Of a stretch of 64,000 nt of DNA, positions 1,720 to 59,329 are shown piece by piece. The first letter of the stretch is position 1; every line of letters begins with the position of its first letter. A program made the translations under genes and the position numbers. Source of the DNA: Vicugna vicugna (taxonomy: Eukaryota); assembly GCA_013265495.1 (NCBI GenBank), contig MU059537.1, forward strand, positions 124,001 through 188,000, given 5' to 3'. The notes below the pieces were generated by a model. That model worked only from the letters and a program-made list of their open reading frames with translations, was not told where the DNA came from and ran no database searches.

Positions 1720-2061
<342 letters not shown>

Positions 2062-12912: not shown

Positions 12913-12985
12913 AGCGACCTGCTGGATGTGAACCAGATCATCAAGGACTTGGCCTCCATGGTGTCAGAGCAAGGAGACGCCATCG
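12913..12985 (+). CDS. TSNARE1: TSNARE1 coding exon, N-terminal half of Qa-SNARE motif, phase 0-1 (73 nt)
   Basis: Acceptor ttgtttccacag|, donor atcg|GTGGGT. Encodes SDLLDVNQIIKDLASMVSEQGDAI plus 1 nt, including the syntaxin zero-layer Q (EQG). In frame with 1810-1968. Confidence 0.93.
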
Positions 12986-14294
12986 GTGGGTACCCACGCC
13001 ATCTGTCAGGCCACCTGCCCCTCCCCCCGGTGTGGGGCTGGGGCGGCTTCTGGGGTCTGAGTGTCTCCCCAGCCCCTCAGGAAGGCCGGGCAAGGGAGAC
13101 CCAGGCCAGAGGTTGGCCCGCCCCTTCTCCTCACTGAGGAGCGCTGGCCTGTGTGCCCCCTGCCCTGGGCCTTCCTCCTCAGCCAGGGGCTCCCCAGGGT
13201 GAGGACCAGCTGTCTGGGGGGCGTCAGACTGCAGTGGGTGCCCCAGCGGAGGGCGCTGGACGTGGCACCACCGTGGAGTGCCGATCCTGCTGCTGATTCA
13301 CCACGTCAGCCACTTCTCAGGAAACGTGGGTGGTGGGGACAGGGCTGTGCAGGACGAGCCGTTGTCCCTGCTGTTCCTTCCACGTGAGAGCCTCCGCCCC
13401 ACCAGCCCGGTGCCCACACCCTGCGGCCATATGGCTTCTCCTGAGCGCCCTGGGCGCCCGAGCAGGAACTCACCACCCTCTGGCCTAGAAGAGTGGCTCC
13501 TGGTCCCCAGAGCCACTTGCCAACAGTCAGCTCCCGGCCAGGACCCCAGGGCTCACCCACCCAGCCTCTCTACCTGTTCCCCGGCTGAGCTGTTGCCTCA
13601 CCAGGGGCCCCGCGGCTGTGAATAAGCCTCTCGCCTCTCAGCCTGGGTGCCGTGGAGCTTCTGAGGTCCAGGCATGTGCTGTTCCCTGGCGGGCAGCCCA
13701 GCCGCCCCCCTGCCCTAGGAGGGCGACTGGACAGGGTTGGGCCGTGACGCTGGCAGGCTTGTCCTCGCTCCCACGGGATCCCGCTCCTCAGCCTGGGCAG
13801 CTCCAGTGGGACCGCCCCGTCACCCCTTCACAGCACCTCTTGCAGGACCCCCACCTCCACCTCTGGCTGGCTGTCTTGGGGCGGTGTATGCAAAATGCTT
13901 TGTACACTCCAGATGGATGCCCCGGTGTCTACAGATGGTCACTCAGTCCTGCTCCTGGACGATCAGGAAGGGATCGTCTCCCGGTGGGGAGGTGGAGAGG
14001 GCTGACCTGCTGCAACCGTGTAGGGGCCCGGCGGAGGGGTGGGCACCTGGGGACCAGAGTAGCCAGGAGCCAGGACCCCACTGCCCCCTGATGTGGGTGT
14101 TTCTAGGGTGATGGACGTTGGGCTGGGGCCACTGTACCCTCTCCAGGGAGCAGTGGGGGCCTGGGACCAGGATTCTGGGGGTTCCCTGCTCTCCATGGCC
14201 CGTCCCATCTGCTGCCCACTCAGCCTCTGGTGCCTTTCCAGGGTCCAGAAGCAGCCAAGCCACATGCCAGCGGAGCTCCAGCCCCGAGCCGGCC

Positions 14295-14700
14295 ATGGCG
14301 GCCCTGCTGTCCGGGCCGGGCTGCGTGCCCCTGCGGCCGAGCTCCCACTCCCGCACCAAGACCCGGAAGCCCAACTTCAGCCCCCAGGAGACAGAGGTGC
14401 TGGTGCAGAGGGTCACGCGCCACTACCCGCTGCTGTTCGGGGCGCTGCGGGGCCCGCCCGCCCGGAAGCATCGCGTGTGGAGCCGCATCCTGCAGGCGGT
14501 GAACGCACTGGGCTACTGCCGCCGGGACCTGGGCGACGTCAAGCACAAGTGGCGGGACCTGCGCGGCGTGGTGCGCCGGAAGCTGGCCGAGCGGCCCCGG
14601 GCCCCTGGCCCTGTGCTCACGCCCGTCGAGCGCATGGTGGCCGAGACCTTCGCAGTCCCGGGCCCCCCGGGCGAGGGCCAGGCCGCAGAGCTGCTGCCAA
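14295..14700 (+). CDS. Myb/SANT-like (Myb_DNA-bind_5-type) DNA-binding domain coding exon nested in a TSNARE1 intron; the exon probably starts at 14242
   Basis: Kozak gccATGg at 14295. Encodes RKPNFSPQETEVLVQRVTRHYPLLFG...RVWSRILQAVNALGYCRRDLGDVKHKWRDLRGVVRRKL...LTPVERMV, the pattern of MYPOP/NAIF1/TSNARE1-type Myb domains. Perfect donor ccaa|GTAAGT at 14700/14701 (phase 1), acceptor gcctttccag| before 14242, CpG-rich codons. Confidence 0.85.
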
Positions 14701-17700
14701 GTAAGTGGCCCCTTCACCGCCTGCAAGGGGCTTCCAGCGCATGACCGCCGAGAGCAAGATTAGGGGAGAGCGGAGGCCCCTTGGCATCTAGATGGGGGCA
14801 TGGAGGCTCAAAACCAGGGAGTGCAGGAGCTGAGGCTGAGTCAGGTCGGCCCTGGCCCGGGCTTGGGGGCATCTGGGGTTGTCCCATGTGACAGTGCGGC
14901 CACCAGCCTCCAGAAACCCACAGGAGCTGAGGTGCAGGTGAACCGCTGGACTGCTCGTGGAAAGCCGTCACCAGCCCAGCTCAGCTCAGCTCCCTGCCCG
15001 CTGTGTGCCCTATCTTGGGTGTAGGGGAGGGAGTAGGGGTGACCGCACCCTCCCTCTGACCCCCTCATTGTGGGGGCCCCTCTCCCCGGGTCGCAGCCCC
15101 CAGACCAGGCCAGGCCCGAGCGCTATCTGGAGGCTCTTAGCTTCCTAGGGCAGGCTGATCCCCTCGGAGCCCGTGGGCCCACCTCCAGGGCCCACCTTTT
15201 CAGAAGGGTCTGTACCTGGTGAAGAAGACGCGGGTGGCACAGTGCCTCTGACTCCGGGGCAGGGCTGGCTCACTCCTGCCGCCTGCAGCGCCTCCTCCTG
15301 CCCGCTCCGCCTGCTCCTCGTCCTCCTCCTCAAGACACCTCTGAACCTCGTCAGGAGCGCCCTTCCCCTGCTGTCTGCATGCAGCGGCTCCGCCCACAGC
15401 TCAGAGCTGAGTCCTGCTGGACCCTTCCCCACCCCTTCCTGGGGAGCTGCTGGGAAGACTGAGGATGAAGCCAGAAGCAGGACCACCTCCCTCTTGAGGG
15501 CTGCAGAGTGGACAGCAGGACTCAGCCTCGTGGGGACAAGCAGAGGCCCCAGATGCCACCAACAGAGGCCCCAGCAGACCTTCTAGTGGGGGGTCTGTGC
15601 AGAGCAAGCCTGGGCCAGTCAGAGATGCAGGCAGACCCCGACGTGGCCGTGCCCTGGGCTGGGCTTGGTCGTGGGCCTGAATGATGGGGTGGGGTGGGGC
15701 CCGCCTGATAGTCCTGGGGAGGCCACCCGCTCTCCTACAGGCATAGCCAGACCTGGTTTTGGGGTGCTGAAGGGCGGGCAGCGGGCAGCATGGGTGTGGC
15801 CCTGGGTGCTCCGACCTTCCCATGAGCCCCCAGCCCTGGAGTGAGGTGGGAGCTTGCGACTGCGCTTGTCCCCTGGGTGTGGTGCTTGGCTCGGAAGGCT
15901 TCCTGTCCACCCTGGTGGGCCAGTGCCCCCTCCGCCAGACCCCATGGCTCCCCTCCCGGGCTCTCCTCCATCAGGGCAGCCAACCGGCTGGTCCCTTAGT
16001 GCTGTGAGCTCTGCGGGGAGTGGCCGACACCGTGCCGACGGGTCCTGAGATTTGTTAAATGTGTGAGAGCAACGTGGGGTGAGGCTGAGGCCAAGCAGGG
16101 AAGTGGCTGCAGCGCCTGGTTTTGGGGGTGATGGTGGAGACCACAGCTGGAGGCCCAGCCCCGCCAGCGCTGCCCTCTGGGTCGGCACTGGCCTGGGGCT
16201 GAGGCACGATCCCGGCGTACGGGCATCTCCCGGCTGTAGGGCTGAGGAAAGCCCGCTGGCCGCGTGTAGGGCCCCCCAGGGGTGCCTGTGCCTGGGTTCC
16301 CCCCACTTGGACTGGGCTTTGCAGGGCTGTCCCCGGTCAACCTGGAATCTTTATGACGAGGTGAAGGGGGTGGCCCGCGGCCAATGAGGCGTCAGCACCA
16401 TAGGCCGTGTGGTGGGGTGCCCCCGCTTGCCTGGCAGCCCCCAGGGCCCAGGAGAGGGTCGCTGGCCACGAGCCAGGGGTCTGCTTGTACGGTGTCCCAG
16501 GGTGGAGCCGTGTGTGATCTGGGGGCTGAGCAGATCTGCGATCCAGCCCGGGGGCCACAGGACGTTTGTTCTCTGGGCTGCGTGCACCCTGGCCGCCGGG
16601 GGCGCTTGCCTCTGGGATGTACGCTACCATCAGAGTCAGGCTCCCTGCCGCGGGGCGCCGACTCGGTGCAGACCAGGGCTGGGCAGTCTGAGGGCAGGTC
16701 CCCGCGCAGCCCAGAGCGTGTGTGGTTGCAGGTCAGAGCAAAAAGCCAGCTAGGAGTGTGACCCCAGCTCACGGCTGGCCCAGACACTGCTGCCCGCCAG
16801 GCACAGCCACCTCTCTCTGTGTCGGGGCTCCGCCAGGTTGTTGCCGACAGAGTCTGGAGCACAAGGTAGCTCCTAATCACAGTAGTTGGTGGTGGCAGGG
16901 GCGGGGGCCTGGGTGGGCGCCCTCCCCCGACCCCCCGCAGGGCTGGTCCTGCCTCGGGGCAGCTGCGTTCCTTCTTCCTCATCTAGGCTGGCTGGAGAGG
17001 CACCACGGGAGGCCTGCGCCCCTGGCAGGCGGCAAAGGCACCCTGCAGGCCCCAGCTCCAGGAGGGCCCGCCCACACCCTCTCCTGGTGGGGAGCACACC
17101 CACGGGGCCTCAGGACGCCGAGCCGGGGCGGTTCCCGCCTTTGAGGGGACCTTGCCGGCCTCAGGCCTCGGGCGGCGCCCAGGGGCACAGCTGCAGGAAG
17201 AGGAGTGATTGGAATCCAGCCATTTCTGCCTCCAGAGCTCTGAAAATGTGTGAATTTGGAGGCGTGTCTGCTCTTCCTGGAAGAGTTCATTTCACGTGTT
17301 ACTGCGTCCGGTGCAGTGGCAGCAGCTGGTCTGTGCTGAGGGCGGCGCCCCTGGCTGCGGGCTCTCAGCTGCTCATCTGCGGGCACGGGGCTCTTTCCCA
17401 TTCATTGGCAGAAGACACTGCGCAGGGGGGTCCTCACCTGGATTCAAACCCGGTTCCTCGCAGGGTCGAGTGCCGCAGCCCTAACTCCCCACTGCCCTGC
17501 ATGCCCCTCGGCGGTGGGGTGGGGACGGGTCTGGTGCATGGTTTACATGATGCTGCCTTTTAACCGCTGGCATCGCTGAGCGAAATCTTCAGGTTTCCGC
17601 GGGCAGCCCCTGGACCTCGTCAGCAGCTCAGGTGTGCTGCTGGTGTGACATCTTGGGGGCTGTGTTGACACACCTACCAGGCGAATTCCCTGGTCCCCCA

Positions 17701-18127
17701 CTCAGCCCCGCACGGTAGTCAGAACCGGCTGATCAGGGCCCGGACACCCGTGGCCAGCGCGCAGAGGAGGGTGTTCGCAGACCCCGTCACGCTGTCTTCA
17801 CAGCCGCTCTGTGAGCCTGTGCAGTCGCCCCCAGGGTGCAGAGTTGTAGCAGAGCCAGGCCCGCACCCTGTCTTGAGTGGGCTGCTGCTGCCCCGAGGGG
17901 GCGCTTCCAGGCTCCCTGCCCTACAGCTCGGCCCAGCCGGTGCTCTATCCTTGCCGCCTCTGCTTCTCTGAAGGCTGGGCTTCCTGCCTGGGCCTCCGAG
18001 TGACCACCAGGGGGTCAGATGCTGTCTGCTTCCGCCCCCCGCGGCCCCAGGCTGGGCTCCCCAGGCTCGCCCTCGGGTGACCCCAGGGTCCCCACTCTGT
18101 AACTGCTTCTGTTGTCTTGATTTGCAG

Positions 18128-18210
18128 ATAGTATTGAAGCCGGCCTTGAGGCTGTGTCCTCACACACAGAGGCGGCCAGCGAGCTCCTGGCCGGAGCCAG
18201 CCGGCACCAA
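18128..18210 (+). CDS. TSNARE1: TSNARE1 coding exon, C-terminal half of Qa-SNARE motif, phase 1-0 (83 nt)
   Basis: Acceptor gtcttgatttgcag|, donor caa|GTAAGT. G+AT gives D, then SIEAGLEAVSSHTEAASELLAGASRHQ, completing the syntaxin SNARE heptads in frame with 12913-12985. Confidence 0.93.
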
Positions 18211-19951
18211 GTAAGTCAGTGTGAGGGGACAGCCCGTGGCCCGGGAGGGGCAGGTCTGCAGGGTCTTCTCTGAGCCCAGGCGGACTGCTATGGGGAGCGG
18301 ACAGGAAGGGGCTGCGGGCCCAGGACGGTCAGCACCGCCTCCCGTCTGGTTTGCACCCCCACCGAGGGGGCGGCCTGGGGTCTCTGCCTGCTGGCTCTGC
18401 CAAGCGAGAGGACAGGGGTGCGTGGCCAGCTGTGGGAGTGGCCGGGGCTCCCAGGATTGTGCCGCATCCCCGAGCTGCCCCTGCAGGACGTTCCATGGCT
18501 TCTCTCGTTTTTCTCAGAAGGCTGGGTGGGTCTACCCTCGTCTGCTGCCTTCCTGGAGGAGAGGGCCGCAGAGAGGGCCGCCTGGCCTCCTGCGCCTCCA
18601 CCTGCCACTGGGCCAGGTGTGGCTCCATGTCTGCCCGTGGTCTGGCCCTGGGCTGGAGCTGGGGGGGCCTCCCCGCCAGGTTGGAGCAGGCAGAACTTGA
18701 CTTGGGACAAGTTGGCTCAGTGAGGACAAGATCAGACCTTTATTTGTTTGATACGAGGCCAAGGGCAGCCTCAGGGATCGATGACGGGCCTCTTGACCCA
18801 CGTTCAGTACCGGAACCCCTGGTGGGCTCAGGCCTACGTCCATCGAGGGGTCAGCAACCGCCCTCTGCTGGCTCCCTACTGCTCACTGGCCCTCTGCTCT
18901 GTGCTGCGCCCTGACATGCAGAGATGGACCCCGCAGAGCCTGTTCCTCTGGGAGCGTGTGTCCTAGGGGTGGGGTGGGTGGACAGTCCAGTCCAGTGACA
19001 CGAGGGCCCTGGCCCGGCTGAGGCAGGGCAGGCTTCCTGGGGGAGCGCCAAGCAGGAGTTGTCCTGGTGGAGAGGACAGAGGCCAAAGGAGGGGCAGCCC
19101 AGGTGAGCTCGGGACACCGCAGGCTGGAGTGCAGAGTGTGGGGGCTGTGCCGTTGGGAGTGGCGTGGAGACTGGGGAGAGATGTGGACCAGGTCCTCGTT
19201 CTGTGGGGGCTTCAGGACATCAGAGCTGTGCTGGCAAAGGGGACTGTAGTTGCCCTGGGGGGAGGAGAGGTCTCAGGGCGGTGGTCTGGACCGTGCAGGG
19301 TCTGTAGGTGGGGCAAACAGTGGGAAAGGGCAGGCCCCCTCCTGGCACCGCGTCTGCTCCCTTCCCACACCTCCCCTCCCTCAGGGAGCCAGGTGGGCAG
19401 TGCGCACGCGGGACCGGCAGCCGCAAGACTCTGCGAGACCGTCTGAGGTTGGAGGCTGGGCCCACTGTTGGCCTCCCCTTTTGTCTGTCGGTGGCCATCA
19501 GACTTCTGAGGCAGGGGCTGGCCTCACTGGCAGCTGGTGAACGCCACACCAGTGGGGAAGCGGGACATGCCTGCAGGATCGGGCAGAAGCAGGGCTGGAG
19601 GATGTCTGTTCACGCCCGCTGCAGGCTCTCTGCCCTAGCCACAGCCCCCACCTGCCAGCATGTGAGGGCGTCAGGCGTGGTCCCTCTAGGGCCGCCCAGC
19701 GTGAAGGTACAGGTTGCAACTGACGAACGAGGTAGACTCATGGGAAGCCCAGGGCCCGGCCTCTCTAATGGGAACTCTCCGAACGGTGGTGCCTGCCAAG
19801 GGCCCTCACCTCCAGAAAGCTTCATCTCACCTCGAGAAGGAGCAACGTACTGGCTGGGTGGCTCCTTCCAAGAGCACCAGGGCCGCCAAGTCCGAAGGAT
19901 CAGCGGGTGCCTGGACCGCAGATTCCTGGACCACAGAGGAGGGTGTGACCA

Positions 19952-20008
19952 TGAGGAGGAGGAGGAAGAGGAACAGGAGGAGGAAGAGGAGGAGAAGGAG
20001 GAGGAGGC
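19952..20008. repeat. (GAG)n-rich purine tract
   Basis: gaggaggaggaggaagaggaacaggaggaggaagaggaggagaaggaggaggaggca seen directly. Confidence 0.85.
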
Positions 20009-20359
20009 AGCACCGGCAGCCACCTGCGCCCTTGGACACATTGGGCTCAGAACCCTGGCCCGCTTCCCCGGGGGCCTGTGGCCCCGTCCTCTGGGGTGAT
20101 GCTGTCATCACCCCTTTCCTGTCCAAAGCAGGAACCCCTGTGCCATAGATGAGCTGGGTGGGGGCTCAGACCCAGGATGTACAGTCAAAGTTACTGCCAC
20201 AGTGTGAAGTCCTCGACCTGCCTCCACTTCCATGCAGCACGTCGGGAAATGCCTAGTGAGATGGGGTGCCAGCGCAGCCCGTGTCTCAGGCCTGGCGAGG
20301 TCTCCCTCGGTCCTGGGCTGGCTTACCCTTCACCCGCAGACAGTTGGAAGGTTAGCAGC

Positions 20360-20490
20360 CCCTCAGCCAGACTGTCCATTTGCAGATTAGGGGATTGAGG
20401 CCCCGAGAAGAGAAGGGCTTTCCCAGGTCACAGCCTGGCGTTGGGGCCCAGTTTGTCGGACTACAAATCCTGGCTCTTCCTGCCGCCCCA
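20360..20490 (-). mobile_element. MIR SINE fragment
   Basis: ccatttgcagattagggattgaggccccgagaagagaagggctttcccaggtcacagcc resembles antisense MIR. Confidence 0.65.
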
Positions 20491-20587
20491 GGGAAGTTCT
20501 GCTTCCATGTGCACCCACTCATCCCTCCAGGACGTCCGCTGGGTGGTGGGTGGGGGGACTGAGGGCTGGGAGGTATATACACAAGTA

Positions 20588-20870
20588 GGTGGATGGGCGC
20601 GTGGCTGGATGGACAGAGGTGAATGATGGATGGGTGGATCAAGGATGGATAGACAGTGGATGAGGATGAATGGATTGAGGATGGTTGGCTGAGAGATGAA
20701 CAGATGGATGGACGGATGGATGTAAGGAAGGATGAAAGGAAGGAGGGGATGGGTAGGTTGGATGGATGCTTGGTGAACAAACGGATGGGCAGCGAGCTGA
20801 GGGGACGGATGAGCATGTGGACGTGTGTAGGTGGGCTGGTGGACAGACAGATGGCAGCATGGTGGTAGCA
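20588..20870. repeat. Degenerate (TGGA)n low-complexity repeat
   Basis: Run of ggatggat/gatgga units directly visible. Confidence 0.85.
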
Positions 20871-21088
20871 TTCCGGCTTGGGAGCCGCCAGGTTGAGTTT
20901 CAGTCTCGGCGTTACTGGAGGAAGTCTTTCGCCCTCTCTTTGGTGTCCTGGTGAGGGTGCAGCTGGCCACCACAGAGGGGCCCCTCGAGACCCCCATATC
21001 TGCACGTGCAGGACCGTCTGCGAGTGGCCCCTCCTGGCCCTCCCAGTCCTGGGCCGTGGGGCTCACGTTTCCTGTCTCCCCCTGCTAG

Positions 21089-21669
21089 CAGACGAGGAGG
21101 ACGAGGCCCCCAGCTGCCTGTGGCTGCCCCTGCGGACACTGGATGGGCCGAGCCTGCCCGAAGCCGACCCCCTGGACCTCCGAGGAGCCTACCCTGCTGC
21201 CACTTCCTCACCCTCTCCACCCGCCTCCCCAGCCTCAGCGCCCCCGGCGGCCGCATTCCCTGGGGCTTCCCGGCCCTCGCCACCCACCTCTGTAACACCC
21301 CAGCCCTTGGGGAAGCCCGCGGTGGCCGAGGCCTCAGAGTTTGAGCGGAGGCTCCTGGACTCCCAGCGGCGACAGGGTGCCGTGCTGCGCTCCTGGTCCC
21401 AGCAGCAGAGCACGCTGATGGCCCAGCAGAATGCACTGCTGCAGAGGCTGGCCGAGCAGAGCCAGAGGCTGGCCGACGGCGTCGAGGCCCTCAACCGAAC
21501 GCTGGAGAGGCTGGTGGAGGCCCGCCCGGCCCTGGGTGCCTCGCCCCCCATCCCTGACGGCCCCCTTGGGGGCGGAACAGCCTGTGGGCCGGATGGAGCC
21601 CCCCAGGGCACCCCCACGGGCCTGGAAGTCTTCTCAGGGATGATCCTGAAGGTGGAGGAGGAGGTCTAG
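21089..21669 (+). CDS. Terminal coding exon (acidic/Pro-rich linker, coiled coil/leucine zipper, C-terminal ILKVEEEV*), putative partner of the Myb exon
   Basis: Pyrimidine-rich acceptor tttcctgtctccccctgcTAG|CAG| (starts 21089 or 21092, both phase 1, matching the 14700 donor). Open for 192 codons to TAG at 21667-21669. Contains the heptad L-AEQSQR-L-ADGVEA-L-NRTLER-L. Confidence 0.75.
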
Positions 21670-32219: not shown

Positions 32220-32433
32220 NNNNNNNNNNNNNNNNNNNNNNNNNNNNNNNNNNNNNNNNNNNNNNNNNNNNNNNNNNNNNNNNNNNNNNNNNNNNNNNNN
32301 NNNNNNNNNNNNNNNNNNNNNNNNNNNNNNNNNNNNNNNNNNNNNNNNNNNNNNNNNNNNNNNNNNNNNNNNNNNNNNNNNNNNNNNNNNNNNNNNNNNN
32401 NNNNNNNNNNNNNNNNNNNNNNNNNNNNNNNNN
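32220..32433. other. Assembly gap (214 N) within a (GGT/GAT) low-complexity repeat
   Basis: N-run flanked by ggtgatggtgctggtggtgacggtggtgac and gtggtgatcatgatg. Confidence 0.98.
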
Positions 32434-56525: not shown

Positions 56526-57947
56526 GAGCCCAGGGGGCCGGCCAGAGCAGCCTGGGTCCCAGGGCCCAAGGGACTGGGCTCTGACCCAGGCAGCCTGTGT
56601 CCCGGTCAGTGCGACTTGGAGAGTGGCGGCGGGGCGCCTTGGAGAAACAAGGCATGGGGGGCAGGGAAGAGCTTGTGCCAGGGTTGGCGGTGGCCGGGAG
56701 GGGACTCCGCGTGTGCTAGGGGTGGAGCCTGTCAGACTCACTCATAGATTGGGGTGAGGGAAGTGGGGTCCAGGGTGTCCCTGCAGCTTAGGTTAGGGGG
56801 CAAATTGGATCTGCTTTGGTTCATTCCATCTGAGCCTGGAGGCCCCACCCAACCTCCCTAACCTCTGCCTGGGGCAGGGCAGCTGCAGGGGCAGCAGGGA
56901 AGGGCCGGTGGGCCTGAGTCACACCCAGCTGCCAGGCACCCTCACCTTTTCTCCCTAAACCTCTGCGTTGTCATCAGGCCCTCCCCGGAGTCCTGCCATC
57001 TCCAGATTCTCACCTTGCCTGCCCCCAGCCCTGAGCAGCCCTGCAGAGAGAGGGGCTGGTGTTTTCGAGAGAATCCTGGAAAGGCCTTGCTTCACCCAAG
57101 GGCTGAGCATGCTGGTGGAGCCCAGACAGGCAGCGGAGGCCTTTGTCCACCTTGTCTGTGGCTGTCCAGCATCACAGCACTCAGTACCCAGAGAGCCCAG
57201 CCAGGGGCTGGGGGCTTCCGGCCTGGGCAGAGCCACGTGGCCCCCAACCCCTGGGATTCTTAGGGGGGGCGCGTGAGTAGGGGCTGCAGGAGGGATGCCA
57301 GAAGGAGACCCCTAGGCTGCATGCTTAGGAGGGCACTGGGGGTGGAAAACTGGAGAGGAGGCTGGGGGCAAGGAGTGGGCAGGGAGGCGGCGGGGGTCCA
57401 GGAGGAGCCAAGGACAGCTCCCAGGTGTGTGGCCCTGAAGGCAGGTGGAAGACAGAGCCCCTCTAAGAGCAGGAGAAAGCGGGGAGTCCCAGGCAGGACT
57501 CCTGGGGAGACCGAGCTGGGCAGGATGGGGTGAGGGGTGGGGTAGGCATTTAGGATGCGGTGGCCCCAAGGCCTTGGTGGAGTCTGACCAGGGCCAGGCA
57601 CCTGTGGCCCCAGCAATGGCCAGTCTCCTCGGACCTCTGCTTTGTCATCTGTGAGAAGGAGACTGATCACTGGGGCCCACCCTCCCCGGGGCAAGTCCTT
57701 GCTACCTTATGGCACTGCCCAGTCCCCCGCCCCCGAGGTGAGCAGAGAGGAGAGACCCGCGCTCTGACAGCCCTGCCCGTGGGAAAGCGCTCGACCCCTC
57801 AAGGAGGGTGGCCCGTTGGAGAGAGAGCCAGGCCTGGGAGCCGGCGCGGCCCTCCCCCTGCCCCTGGCCCAGCCTCCTCCCCTGGTCTGGCCGCACCTGC
57901 GCCTCAGCTCTCCCAGCTGGGAGCTGATGGGGTTTCTCGTTTTGCAG

Positions 57948-58028
57948 GTCGGTGCTGTCACCTGGCCTGCATGGACCGCAGAGCTTCACACCTGCCTGCC
58001 TCCCGCCCCTGCGCCGGCCCCTGGCTGA
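57948..58028 (+). CDS. Candidate alternative last coding exon of TSNARE1 (26 aa, no transmembrane segment)
   Basis: Strong acceptor gggtttctcgttttgcag|G. Phase-0 reading VGAVTWPAWTAELHTCLPPAPAPAPG* fits the phase-0 donor at 18210. Overlapping AATAAA hexamers follow 7 nt after the stop. No expression evidence available. Confidence 0.35.
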   Translation, partial: VGAVTWPAWTAELHTCLPPAPAPAPG

Positions 58029-58035
58029 GTCCCCT

Positions 58036-58045
58036 AATAAATAAA
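58036..58045 (+). terminator. Tandem overlapping canonical poly(A) signals AATAAATAAA
   Basis: AATAAA at 58036-58041 and 58040-58045 in otherwise GC-rich sequence not recognised as a repeat. Confidence 0.4.
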
Positions 58046-59329
58046 GTGTCCTCACGTAGCCAGCCACAGCGGGCCCTAGTCCCCATTTGTCATCCGCCGG
58101 CAGATGAGAGGCAGCTTTCTGGCTCTGGGATCCCGAGGTGGAGCCTGGCTATGTTGGGCGGGAAGGTGCGGCAGGGGTGTGATCCTGTGTGTATGCGTGC
58201 ATGTGTGCGTGTGTGTGTGCAGGTGAGGTGGTGACGTGGACATCAAAAGCACGATGGGGGTGGCCCAGGGCAGGAAGCCACCGTGCAGTGACCTGGTGTG
58301 AGGCCCAGGGCCGCGTCCCCCGGCTGGTGCCGCACCCCCCCGGCCCTCCCCACCTGGGGGCTCCCTGCCGTCCCTCCTGTGGGAGGCCAGTCTGCAGTGG
58401 GGTTTGCAGGCAGCTCTGGGGCCCCTGCTGCTCCCAGTGTCAGGTTCTTTGCCGCCTGGTGTCTCTGAGGGACGGGCTCCCCTTCTTCTGCTGGAGTGGG
58501 TGGTTGGGGGAGGCACCCCTAAGCAGAGAGACCATCGGGAGCGGCCCCTGCGGGTAGGTGAGAAGAGCAGGCAGCCCCACTCGGGTCAGCACCCCCTTCC
58601 CAGGAACCCGTAGAGCTCAGGACCTCATGCGGGTGGGGCTGCGCACCAGACCCTCCAGGAAGGCGCAGCCCATGGCCTCCAAGCTCGCAGCCGCTTCTGT
58701 AGGATGCTGCTTCCTGCTCAGATGCCGCCCCCGGCGCCCCCCCACCCCTCCCCGAGTCCTGGTCTTCTGCCGGGGAAGGTTTAAAGCATTCAGGGTGGGA
58801 TCCGAGCTGCTTTGTCTCACAGGTGCTTAAGGTTTTAAGATTCTGTGAAGCTCTGAGTTTTTTCCACACTGTTCTTCCCCAGGGGCCTGAGGAACGCGAC
58901 ACCATTGAGGTGTGGGCCGTGGCAGTGGGCAGGGAGCGGGGGCGGACCCCCGGCCTCAGCTGGGGCCACTTCCTCTGCTCTGCTGCCCTGGCTGCCGGCT
59001 GCCCGGGCCCTGGGGTGTCTGGAGGAGGTGTTGGAAGCAAATTGGATTTTACATGTCCGGCTGCAGGTGTGAGGCGCTCGGGCGGCTGGAGGGGCAGCTG
59101 GAGGAGGCAGCTCTGCCCCTGCTGTGTCTGAGCCACAGTCTGGCCCTGCTGGCCGGGCTCGGGAGGGTCCTCGTGGGGGAGGGGCTCTGCTGGGGCAGGG
59201 CAAGACTGGAATTGGGGATGGAGGGCAGGAGATGGCTGGTTTATTTCTCTCCTGCCCAGCTAGGAAGTGGGAGTGGCAGAGAACACTGGCTCAAGTTCCC
59301 TTTAGTTGAGGTCCCTATGCTGGAGTGAC

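Follow-up and report, generated by a model that had tools for sequence, protein, structure and literature searches.

Background

The Harbinger transposon Myb-like protein and its domesticated relatives are nuclear and DNA-bound, and they dimerise or bind a partner. A Myb domain of this kind is also well known at the N-terminus of tSNARE1, a syntaxin-family protein. Plooster et al. 2021 validated four brain isoforms of tSNARE1, and their 15-exon model lists no exon at the position of the one we call Myb-A here.

This work will focus on two exons in the 3' part of TSNARE1, in a 64,000-nucleotide stretch of DNA from Vicugna vicugna that we call the window. The preliminary description of the window joined these exons into a second domesticated Harbinger Myb-like gene, hidden inside TSNARE1 and independent of it. 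Sequence comparison argues that the two exons are a real coding unit under evolutionary constraint, made of a transposon-derived DNA-binding domain and a long coiled coil. We believe that they probably give TSNARE1 an alternative 3' coding end and do not form a separate gene.

The two exons and their neighbours

The features that matter here all lie on the same strand.

12913..12985, + strand: TSNARE1 exon SNARE-a, encoding …DLLDVNQIIKDLASMVSEQGDAI and ending directly past the zero-layer Q; phase-1 donor
14242..14700, + strand: Myb-A exon, 459 nt, both ends in phase 1; acceptor tttccag/g; no stop between acceptor and donor
14295..14297, + strand: in-frame ATG in a good Kozak context (gccggccATGg); lineage-specific
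14364..14588, + strand: Myb_DNA-bind_5 (trihelix) domain, Pfam PF13873, residues 24-98 of the ORF counted from ATG 14295
14701..14706, + strand: consensus donor GTAAGT, directly past the phase-1 exon end at 14700
18128..18210, + strand: TSNARE1 exon SNARE-b, the end of the SNARE motif, DSIEAGLEAVSSHTEAASELLAGASRHQ; acceptor phase 1, donor phase 0
21089..21669, + strand: coil exon with a tandem TAG/CAG/ acceptor; the native frame runs to the TAG at 21667-21669
21089..21295, + strand: coil exon in its other frame, entered from the phase-0 donor at 18210; 68 codons and a stop
21334..21525, + strand: predicted continuous helix of ~60 residues with 4 leucines 7 residues apart (…LLQRLAEQSQRLADGVEALNRTLERLV…)
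21622..21666, + strand: C-terminal motif LEVFSGMILKVEEEV; its core, SGMILKVE, does not vary between axolotl and camelid

The position of SNARE-a comes from tblastn searches with models from camel, dog, mink and human. It is the exon from which public models pass into the Myb exon, and the junction …EQGDAI/GS… that results is found in mink, ferret-like, meerkat and human models. The splice phases are compatible throughout (SNARE-a donor 1, Myb exon 1/1, coil acceptor 1) and the frame is open from 14242. The coil exon starts at 21089 or 21092, both acceptors being in phase 1, and a pyrimidine tract precedes the TAG/CAG/ at 21085-21091. The join of 14700 to either acceptor that the preliminary description had made is sound: counted from ATG 14295 it gives 135 codons, a split codon (T or N) and 192 or 191 further codons, an open frame of 328 or 327 amino acids. 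It was also right that the two units are interleaved, since SNARE-b lies inside the Myb-to-coil intron (14701-21088). In its native frame the coil exon encodes an acidic DEEDE stretch, a P/S-rich linker, the long helix and the conserved C-terminal motif, in that order. Its other frame corresponds to the TSNARE1 tail without a transmembrane segment (human …HQLMRRTRPPAACGCP; human X29, donkey X25, model P0021), and the position of the stop in that frame varies among species.

The Myb-A exon matches the Pfam profile PF13873, Myb_DNA-bind_5, the profile of the Harbinger-derived Myb-like proteins (NAIF1, MYPOP, MSANTD and the TSNARE1 Myb), at 71.2 bits against a gathering cut-off of 21.7 bits (E 7.1e-20, profile positions 1-77 of 78), which upholds the identity first proposed for it. 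An AlphaFold2 model, built on the dog orthologue and not on the camelid protein, folds the domain as a trihelix (helices 30-42, 55-70 and 79-99; block pLDDT 78-92) and the coil as a single 61-residue helix (221-281, pLDDT 92-97). The top Foldseek matches of this model are TSNARE1, MYPOP and NAIF1. Pfam match, model and structural alignment together bear out the Myb-linker-coil architecture. The coil has the long unbroken helix and the hydrophobic a/d heptad positions of a leucine-zipper coiled coil, with 4 leucines at 7-residue spacing and L or V in the partner position; in whale and pangolin the coil is shorter by precisely one heptad (EQSQRLA). We rejected a bZIP reading because no basic region is adjacent to the helix.

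The tail is harder to place among the other Harbinger Myb-like tails. When a profile built from 10 tails was run on 1.84 billion representatives, the 23 hits were all from this locus and no homologue appeared outside it. The architecture points to a kinship, as does a weak lead from language-model features of the tail alone, whose likeness to a NAIF1 cluster is 0.80, too low to count as evidence.

A probable alternative ending of TSNARE1

Public gene models, those of human and dog among them, already contain the unit, either under TSNARE1 isoforms or under an uncharacterised LOC, which had been suspected from the start. The junction …EPLP/T/DEEDE… is found in RefSeq, Ensembl and UniParc models under TSNARE1. 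Myb-to-coil models cover primates (human XP_011515222.1, X10, and XP_011515225.1, X17; chimpanzee X15), carnivores (dog XP_013974200.1, X14; Arctic fox X3; red fox; meerkat A0A673VPV9; a ferret-like UniParc entry) and rodents (ground squirrels; squirrel LOC143388708), at least six placental species in all. The arrangement of SNARE-a, Myb-A and coil is also present in marsupials and a turtle. All the spliced placental and marsupial Myb-to-coil models that we examined start in upstream TSNARE1 exons, and their entry into the Myb exon is at the counterpart of acceptor 14242 or, in dog, slightly upstream of it. These isoforms are computational models; word shares in RNA runs do not discriminate between spliced and unspliced RNA, and the searchable literature yielded no paper describing a Myb-to-coil TSNARE1 isoform.

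The mechanism we propose would work as follows. Transcripts from the TSNARE1 promoter would cross the N-terminal syntaxin region and the SNARE motif as far as the end of its first half (12913-12985) and then may enter Myb-A at 14242. From donor 14700 they could continue either to the coil exon, at 21089 or 21092, or to the SNARE exon at 18128. By the coil route the SNARE motif would be broken off just past the zero layer, and a NAIF1/MYPOP-like unit would take the place of its remainder. In order, this unit has a basic stretch, a trihelix Myb, a disordered linker that is acidic and P/S-rich, a ~60-residue helix with a four-heptad leucine repeat, and the invariant C-terminal SGMILKVE. Such an isoform should be unable to complete a SNARE bundle. 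By analogy, we would expect it to be a nuclear, DNA-bound factor that dimerises or binds a partner.

The main alternative is the independent nested gene of the preliminary description. It would have an internal promoter in the CpG-rich Myb exon or immediately upstream of it, a two-exon mRNA starting its frame at ATG 14295, and a free-standing NAIF1-like product of 327 or 328 amino acids in camelids, equids and tamarin. In its favour, the ATG has its good Kozak context, the predicted length is that of NAIF1 (327 aa), and the architecture aligns to NAIF1. Free-standing models, 325-334 aa long, are known from a turtle with Myb-A and from frogs and turtles with Myb-B, where the initiator M is conserved, and a frog RNA contig has a Myb-B-plus-coil ORF downstream of a stop in the syntaxin frame. 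There is also a CpG peak on the Myb exon (observed/expected 0.74-0.81), the second-highest among the 400-nt bins of the window. However, this peak is restricted to the exon and the 1.2 kb upstream is at background level.

An independent gene should have a conserved initiation codon, and the ATG is missing from most placentals and from the marsupials examined. The residue is M in camelid, donkey, tamarin and a few further contigs; it is V in dog, mink, whale and marsupials, A in human, E in squirrel and T in bat. In the species that lack the M no other in-frame ATG precedes the Myb domain, and for dog, mink, whale, squirrel and human this holds from the acceptor onward. The codon reads GCC-ATG in camelid and tamarin versus GCC-GTG in whale and mustelid, and by this comparison the camelid ATG is a recurrent CpG transition from GTG at an otherwise internal coding position. 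With the public models also entering from upstream, we consider an independent gene unlikely.

It might instead be argued that the Myb exon is a cassette only, used through 12985 to 14242 and 14700 to 18128, that the coil frame is reached by direct splicing from SNARE-a, and that the Myb-to-coil junction is rare or non-functional. Many models do join Myb-A to SNARE-b, with the junction …EPLP/N or K/SIEA… (donkey X25, lynx, seal, the bat Desmodus, human X35). The Camelus ferus model P0024 splices SNARE-a straight to the coil exon, and the pangolin retains a coil exon without an intact Myb exon. Because the coil frame can be reached directly from SNARE-a, as in P0024, its conservation alone does not prove the Myb-to-coil junction. 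But a Myb domain in the middle of the SNARE motif would disrupt the motif in any case, the linkage of Myb and coil is ancestral (amphibians, turtles, marsupials), and the junction is modelled in the placental species listed above. Exclusive use as a cassette seems to us decidedly improbable.

Conservation and selection

The length of the ORF is by itself no evidence in this window, which is 60-72% G+C and has 161 ORFs of >=70 aa overlapping its first 24 kb. It is conservation that raises the unit above chance, because neither exon has a broken frame in tamarin, a mustelid or blue whale (three other placental orders), pairwise dN/dS for both exons in the proposed frame is 0.23-0.42, and 45 columns of the tail alignment do not vary between axolotl and camelid. 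The dN/dS check suggested in the preliminary description therefore favours its coding claim, with values under 1 and no broken frames in these three lineages. By part, pairwise dN/dS is 0.23-0.39 for the Myb-A exon, 0.10-0.24 for the Myb domain, 0.21-0.40 for the coil and 0-0.25 for the C-terminus, so it is well under 1 also where the other frame does not overlap. Synonymous divergence shows no reduction in the overlapped part of the coil exon, and the length and sequence of the tail are conserved from amphibians (salamanders) to mammals. The pangolin keeps its coil exon while its Myb-A exon is decaying, and the jerboa apparently shows decay as well.

That the exons are relics making no protein, with frames kept open by G+C richness and by constraint on the coil exon from the overlapping TSNARE1 tail frame, is very improbable: the many long chance ORFs, the second reading of the coil exon over its initial 207 nt and the decay in pangolin and apparently jerboa would fit it, but the low dN/dS outside the overlap, the conserved tail, the varying stop of the other frame and the unreduced synonymous divergence speak against it.

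History of the locus

The Myb and coil unit of TSNARE1 is probably the locus's older Harbinger Myb-like unit and not a second domestication, judging from the following comparisons. Turtles and marsupials have the Myb-A exon type in the same position, and the N-terminal Myb exon of TSNARE1 is seen only in placental models. In a tree the Myb-A clade has support of 100/100 with the internal order turtle, marsupial, placental, and the N-terminal Myb falls outside it. The two exon types have the acceptor context …GAFPG in common. Two further points speak against a second domestication: the tail is shared with the Myb-B forms of amphibians and turtles, and the N-terminal Myb appears to be a diverged duplicate.

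The history we favour is documented in part. A Harbinger Myb-like gene would have lodged in the 3' part of a syntaxin gene, and the Myb and coil would be its older descendant, present since early tetrapods. Amphibians and turtles would pair a second Myb exon (Myb-B, with a conserved initial M) with the same coil exon. Mammals would retain only Myb-A; no Myb-B relic was found in the window or in any of five mammalian loci. Placentals would carry an extra, diverged upstream copy of the Myb-A exon type, the familiar N-terminal Myb domain, and they would also use the coil exon in its other frame to make the transmembrane-less tail.

Comparison with known systems

NAIF1 and MYPOP (p42POP) have the same layout as the window unit: a basic stretch, an N-terminal Myb_DNA-bind_5 trihelix, a disordered linker and a long C-terminal helix. 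Foldseek aligns them to the dog-orthologue model over nearly the full length with probability 1.00, at an identity of only ~20% and a TM of ~0.22. Their tails do not match the tail profile of the window unit and, unlike them, the window unit is embedded in a syntaxin gene and spliced to it.

The characterised tSNARE1 isoforms a-d (Plooster et al. 2021) come from the same locus. Their Myb exon is of the same type, human X29 being 59% and mink 66% identical to the window exon, and exon 13 of that study, which encodes the transmembrane-less tail, seems to correspond to the coil exon in its other frame. They have the placental upstream Myb exon and a full SNARE motif, without a Myb exon between the SNARE exons and without the coiled-coil frame.

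The Myb-B forms of amphibians and turtles (Rhinoderma 328 aa, Chelonia 334 aa) share the coil exon. Their tails are 40-46% identical to that of the camelid, with no difference in the SGMILKVE core, and the splice phase agrees. Their Myb-B exon is ~31-37% identical to Myb-A, begins with a conserved M and sits after SNARE-b. Human X10 and X17, dog X14 and meerkat A0A673VPV9 have the same two exons and the same EPLP/T/DEEDE junction, and they are orthologues of the window unit. Both they and the window unit end in …EVFSGMILKVEEE[VI] (dog …KVEDEV); the public isoforms start in upstream TSNARE1 exons and have A (human) or V (dog) where the camelid has M.

Exon map and reading frames

Five exons on the plus strand were placed by tblastn of public TSNARE1 models against the window.

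Table. TSNARE1 exons in the window
about 1804-1968, plus strand: upstream TSNARE1 exon, from tblastn of TSNARE1 models
12913-12985, plus strand: SNARE-a, coding the first part of the SNARE motif; ends …EQGDAI just past the zero-layer Q, with a phase-1 donor
14242-14700, plus strand: Myb-A, the Myb exon; 459 nt, phase 1 at both ends
18128-18210, plus strand: SNARE-b, coding the end of the SNARE motif; acceptor phase 1, donor phase 0
21089-21669, plus strand: coil, the coiled-coil exon; tandem acceptor

The splice signals and frames of the two-exon gene proposed in the preliminary description are all in the window. The ATG at 14295 (context gccggccATGg) opens a frame of 135 codons that runs to 14699; a split codon starts with base 14700, and a GTAAGT donor of phase 1 comes directly after it. 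A pyrimidine tract at about 21070-21091 ends in TAG^CAG^ (carets mark exon boundaries), a tandem acceptor that lets the exon begin at 21089 or 21092, and from 21091 the coil frame is open for 192 codons to the stop TAG at 21667-21669. SNARE-b, which codes DSIEAGLEAVSSHTEAASELLAGASRHQ, does lie inside the proposed intron (14701-21088) by both sequence and tblastn map, and Myb-A matches Pfam Myb_DNA-bind_5 with E 7.1e-20, as had been suspected. The Myb-A frame is open from the acceptor itself (…SGAFPG^SRSSQATCQRSSSPEPAMAALL…), and the phases permit splicing from SNARE-a to Myb-A to coil. We give no weight to ORF length because G+C is 60-72% over the relevant part of the window and 161 ORFs of at least 70 aa lie wholly or partly in its first 24 kb.

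The canonical N-terminal Myb exon, the known upstream Myb exon of placental TSNARE1, is absent from the window by tblastn, the only cross-match being Myb-A at 59-66% identity. The usual transmembrane exon was not detected by tblastn across the whole window. An ORF at 57930-58070 (VGAVTWPAWTAELHTCLPPAPAPAPG, then a stop and AATAAA signals) was considered for that role and rejected, its sequence not being transmembrane-like. Positions 32220-32433 are filled with N (214 in all), reflecting either a gap in the assembly or masking.

A probable alternative 3' module of TSNARE1

Protein searches that allowed longer proteins found the Myb-A-to-coil junction in public TSNARE1 models. It is carried by dog XP_013974200.1 (X14), ground squirrel LOC143388708, a ferret-like UniParc entry, the Arctic fox and red fox models, human XP_011515222.1 (X10) and XP_011515225.1 (X17), chimpanzee X15, and meerkat A0A673VPV9, which has both Myb domains. 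The pattern they share is …EQGDA(I/V/T/A)^(G/A)S…Myb-A…(EPLP or QAT)^T^DEEDE…EVFSGMILKVE(E/D)E; each enters the Myb exon from SNARE-a and uses an acceptor of the 21089 type. Other models (donkey, lynx, seal, Desmodus, human X35) treat the Myb exon as a cassette and go on to SNARE-b, and marsupial and turtle models have it in the same position, after …EQGD(V/T)(L/I). The Myb-plus-coil product is already public as sequence annotation, in human included. Since these protein models are in RefSeq and Ensembl, there is nothing new here as annotation. The idea of a hidden, separate gene is not supported by these models; the milder suggestion that the unit might be annotated as a TSNARE1 isoform was right, since it is so filed in dog, human, chimpanzee, foxes and meerkat. 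We believe that the two exons form an alternative 3' module of TSNARE1, kept under constraint, and not a hidden gene.

Spliced placental Myb-to-coil RNA was sought in public contigs, and those examined were unspliced genomic ORFs. Sequencing runs of a related species that we guess to be RNA contained about 35% of the Myb exon's words. Other RNA runs contained 20-29% of a stretch of which the exon makes up 22%; because these runs did not rank among those richest in the exon, the shares do not tell mature from unspliced RNA, and we rest nothing on them.

The start codon proposed at 14295 is not conserved. In a survey of about 30 Myb-A-type sequences the camelid M is shared by donkey, tamarin and a few other contigs; the position is V in dog, mink, hyena, whale and marsupials, A in human, E in squirrels and T in a bat. 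Where M is absent, no other in-frame ATG lies downstream of the acceptor and ahead of the Myb domain. The site reads GCC ATG in the camelid and tamarin and GCC GTG in a mustelid and in the whale, the closest relative of the camelid sampled for this comparison; the change is a CpG transition and appears to have occurred more than once. CpG observed/expected peaks at 0.74-0.81 over 14201-14800, the second-highest values in the 64-kb window (median 0.39). The peak is confined to the Myb exon, its flanks being at background, including 0.27-0.44 in the 1.2 kb upstream. Because the start residue varies, no substitute ATG exists and the CpG peak covers the exon only, we conclude from these comparisons that a free-standing protein begun at 14295 cannot be a conserved product. 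It may occur as a camelid-specific extra.

Conservation and selection

In placentals the relatives of the tail are mostly genomic ORFs without splicing (from elephant, pangolin, whale and many other contigs), and marsupials, turtles, frogs and salamanders have spliced models with a Myb_DNA-bind_5 domain ahead of the coil tail. From axolotl to camelid the tail alignment has 45 invariant columns, including the SGMILKVE core of the C-terminal motif, and the window tail differs from a Camelus ferus model at about 4 of 192 positions.

We compared orthologous DNA from tamarin, a mustelid, pangolin, blue whale and a marsupial. The proposed frame runs uninterrupted through the two exons in tamarin, mustelid and whale, so the expectation of intact orthologous exons held there; it failed for pangolin Myb-A. 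Pairwise dN/dS, proposed earlier as a check, is well below 1 in both exons across the primate, carnivore, whale and camelid sequences, which indicates purifying selection.

Table. Pairwise dN/dS (Nei-Gojobori)
Myb exon, whole: 0.23-0.39
Coil exon, whole: 0.30-0.42
Myb domain: 0.10-0.24
Helix: 0.21-0.40
Last 14 residues: 0-0.25

The pangolin Myb-A (L003 3616-4073, GCA_032199065.1) is broken by a 1-nt frameshift and carries radical substitutions at conserved residues, such as KHKWRDLR to QHKRRGLR. Its omega is 0.47-0.69; species with an intact exon give 0.11-0.32 over that segment. The pangolin coil exon is still open. Either the Myb part is decaying in this lineage, or an assembly error has combined with relaxed constraint. 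In the Jaculus jaculus TSNARE1 models (P0156, P0167, P0168) Myb-A and coil look degraded, with a truncated Myb and frame changes, which suggests the module was lost in at least some rodents. Tail conservation, open frames and dN/dS show that the Myb-plus-coil unit is real: most of the placentals examined keep it under constraint, and in a few it is decaying.

Origin of the Myb exons

Two kinds of Myb exon serve the coil exon. Turtles, marsupials and placentals have Myb-A (…TKTRKPNFSPQETEVL…), which sits between SNARE-a and SNARE-b. Amphibians and turtles have Myb-B (M-A-x-x-P-R-K-R-K-E-K-F-S…), which follows SNARE-b and has a conserved initiator-like M. A frog RNA contig of 1162 nt (L006 1-1162, SRR27929940) has a spliced Myb-B-plus-coil ORF downstream of the syntaxin-frame stop: the syntaxin frame reads …QLAKANQHQ, then 25 codons and a stop, and the Myb-B ORF lies about 30-40 nt further on. 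This looks like a bicistronic layout or an alternative acceptor. No Myb-B relic was found in the window or in five mammalian loci, where there were only cross-matches to Myb-A.

A Glu-codon-rich element (19872-20136), some 1 kb ahead of the coil exon, has conserved counterparts in whale, tamarin, pangolin and elephant models; the whale 'skin secretory protein xP2-like' and elephant LOC111748934 models have it as their 5' exon. Since camelid and whale read it in different frames, it probably does not code for protein. That it is a relic of the acidic end of a lost Myb-B exon is speculation.

A tree of the Myb segments recovers a Myb-A clade (100/100) with the internal order turtles, marsupials, placentals. 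The placental N-terminal Myb falls outside this clade, yet groups with Myb-A against Myb-B. It retains turtle and marsupial Myb-A states (…H(H/Y)QLLFG, …KV…, …KLG…) that are altered in placental Myb-A. The unspliced ORFs of both exons open with …GAFPG, so they have an acceptor context in common. The N-terminal Myb is missing from turtle and marsupial models. We infer, from a tree without a dating outgroup, that the N-terminal exon is a duplicate of a Myb-A-type exon, taken with its acceptor, made before the placental radiation. The window unit would therefore be the older one, rather than the second domestication that had been proposed.

Two frames in the coil exon

The coil exon codes in two frames. 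Spliced to the phase-0 donor at 18210, positions 21089-21295 read as QTRRTRPPAACGCPCG…, 68 codons in the window, and this frame corresponds to the transmembrane-less tail of human tSNARE1 models (…HQLMRRTRPPAACGCP). It fits exon 13 of Plooster et al., reported there in 93-97% of cortical transcripts. One turtle model joins SNARE-b to the coil exon in the native coil frame. The transmembrane-less frame stops anywhere from about 30 to 190 codons depending on the mammal species, so it looks like an overprint on an older frame; synonymous divergence in the doubly read part is not reduced. For these two reasons we conclude that the coiled-coil frame is the constrained, ancestral one.

Significance

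TSNARE1 is a well-supported schizophrenia risk gene. Its first link to Harbinger was reportedly made by Smith et al. in 2012. Its Myb domain has been regarded as a possible relic, functional studies have focused on the SNARE part, and the 15-exon gene model of the main functional study has no exon at the Myb-A position (Plooster et al.). Searchable literature yielded no published description of Myb-plus-coil isoforms. The interest of this locus lies in overlooked biology; no new kind of element is involved. Besides a coiled-coil exon, the locus has a second Myb exon whose conservation across amniotes exceeds that of the N-terminal exon; together they preserve the full architecture of a Harbinger Myb-like protein. 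The exon behind the transmembrane-less tail of the main brain isoform appears to be that coiled-coil exon in another frame.

A bolder proposal, which we consider rather doubtful, is that the complete NAIF1-like Myb-plus-coiled-coil protein of the founding Harbinger element persists at TSNARE1 under purifying selection in humans and most placentals examined. If true, the unit would be expressed as an overlooked nuclear isoform or, where a CpG transition made an ATG, as in camelids, possibly as a re-emancipated free-standing protein. The transmembrane-less tail of the main human brain isoform would be an out-of-frame overprint, and part of the genetic signal at the schizophrenia locus could run through a DNA-binding product and not endosomal trafficking.

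Structure and comparison with known proteins

The Myb-linker-coil architecture of the preliminary description is borne out by an AlphaFold2 model of the dog orthologue (13 aligned units). It has three Myb helices, a short helix over …LTPVERMVAETF, about 100 disordered residues, and one 61-residue helix with pLDDT 92-97, followed by the C-terminal motif without confident structure. The long helix has four leucines spaced 7 residues apart. The coil exons of blue whale (L004 11607-12178) and pangolin (L003 10384-10919) lack exactly seven codons (EQSQRLA), one heptad between two QRLA repeats, and the coiled-coil register is kept.

A tail profile search of 1.84 billion representatives matched only TSNARE1-locus orthologues, so homology to other Harbinger Myb-like tails is left unsupported. 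A Pfam scan of the tail gave only sub-threshold chance matches, and a language-model score of 0.80 between the tail and the NAIF1 cluster is a lead only. Foldseek alignments to MYPOP and NAIF1 span almost the full length of the unit at a TM of about 0.22, a value to be expected where disorder joins two elements.

A product spliced from SNARE-a to Myb-A to coil would have no SNARE layers past the zero layer, acquiring the Myb domain, the long helix and the conserved C-terminal motif. Harbinger Myb-like proteins and NAIF1/MYPOP are nuclear proteins with a DNA-binding trihelix and a capacity for self-association or partner binding. By analogy with them, the basic stretch of the TSNARE1 product would direct nuclear localisation, its trihelix would bind DNA, and its helix and C-terminal motif may serve self-association or the binding of a partner.
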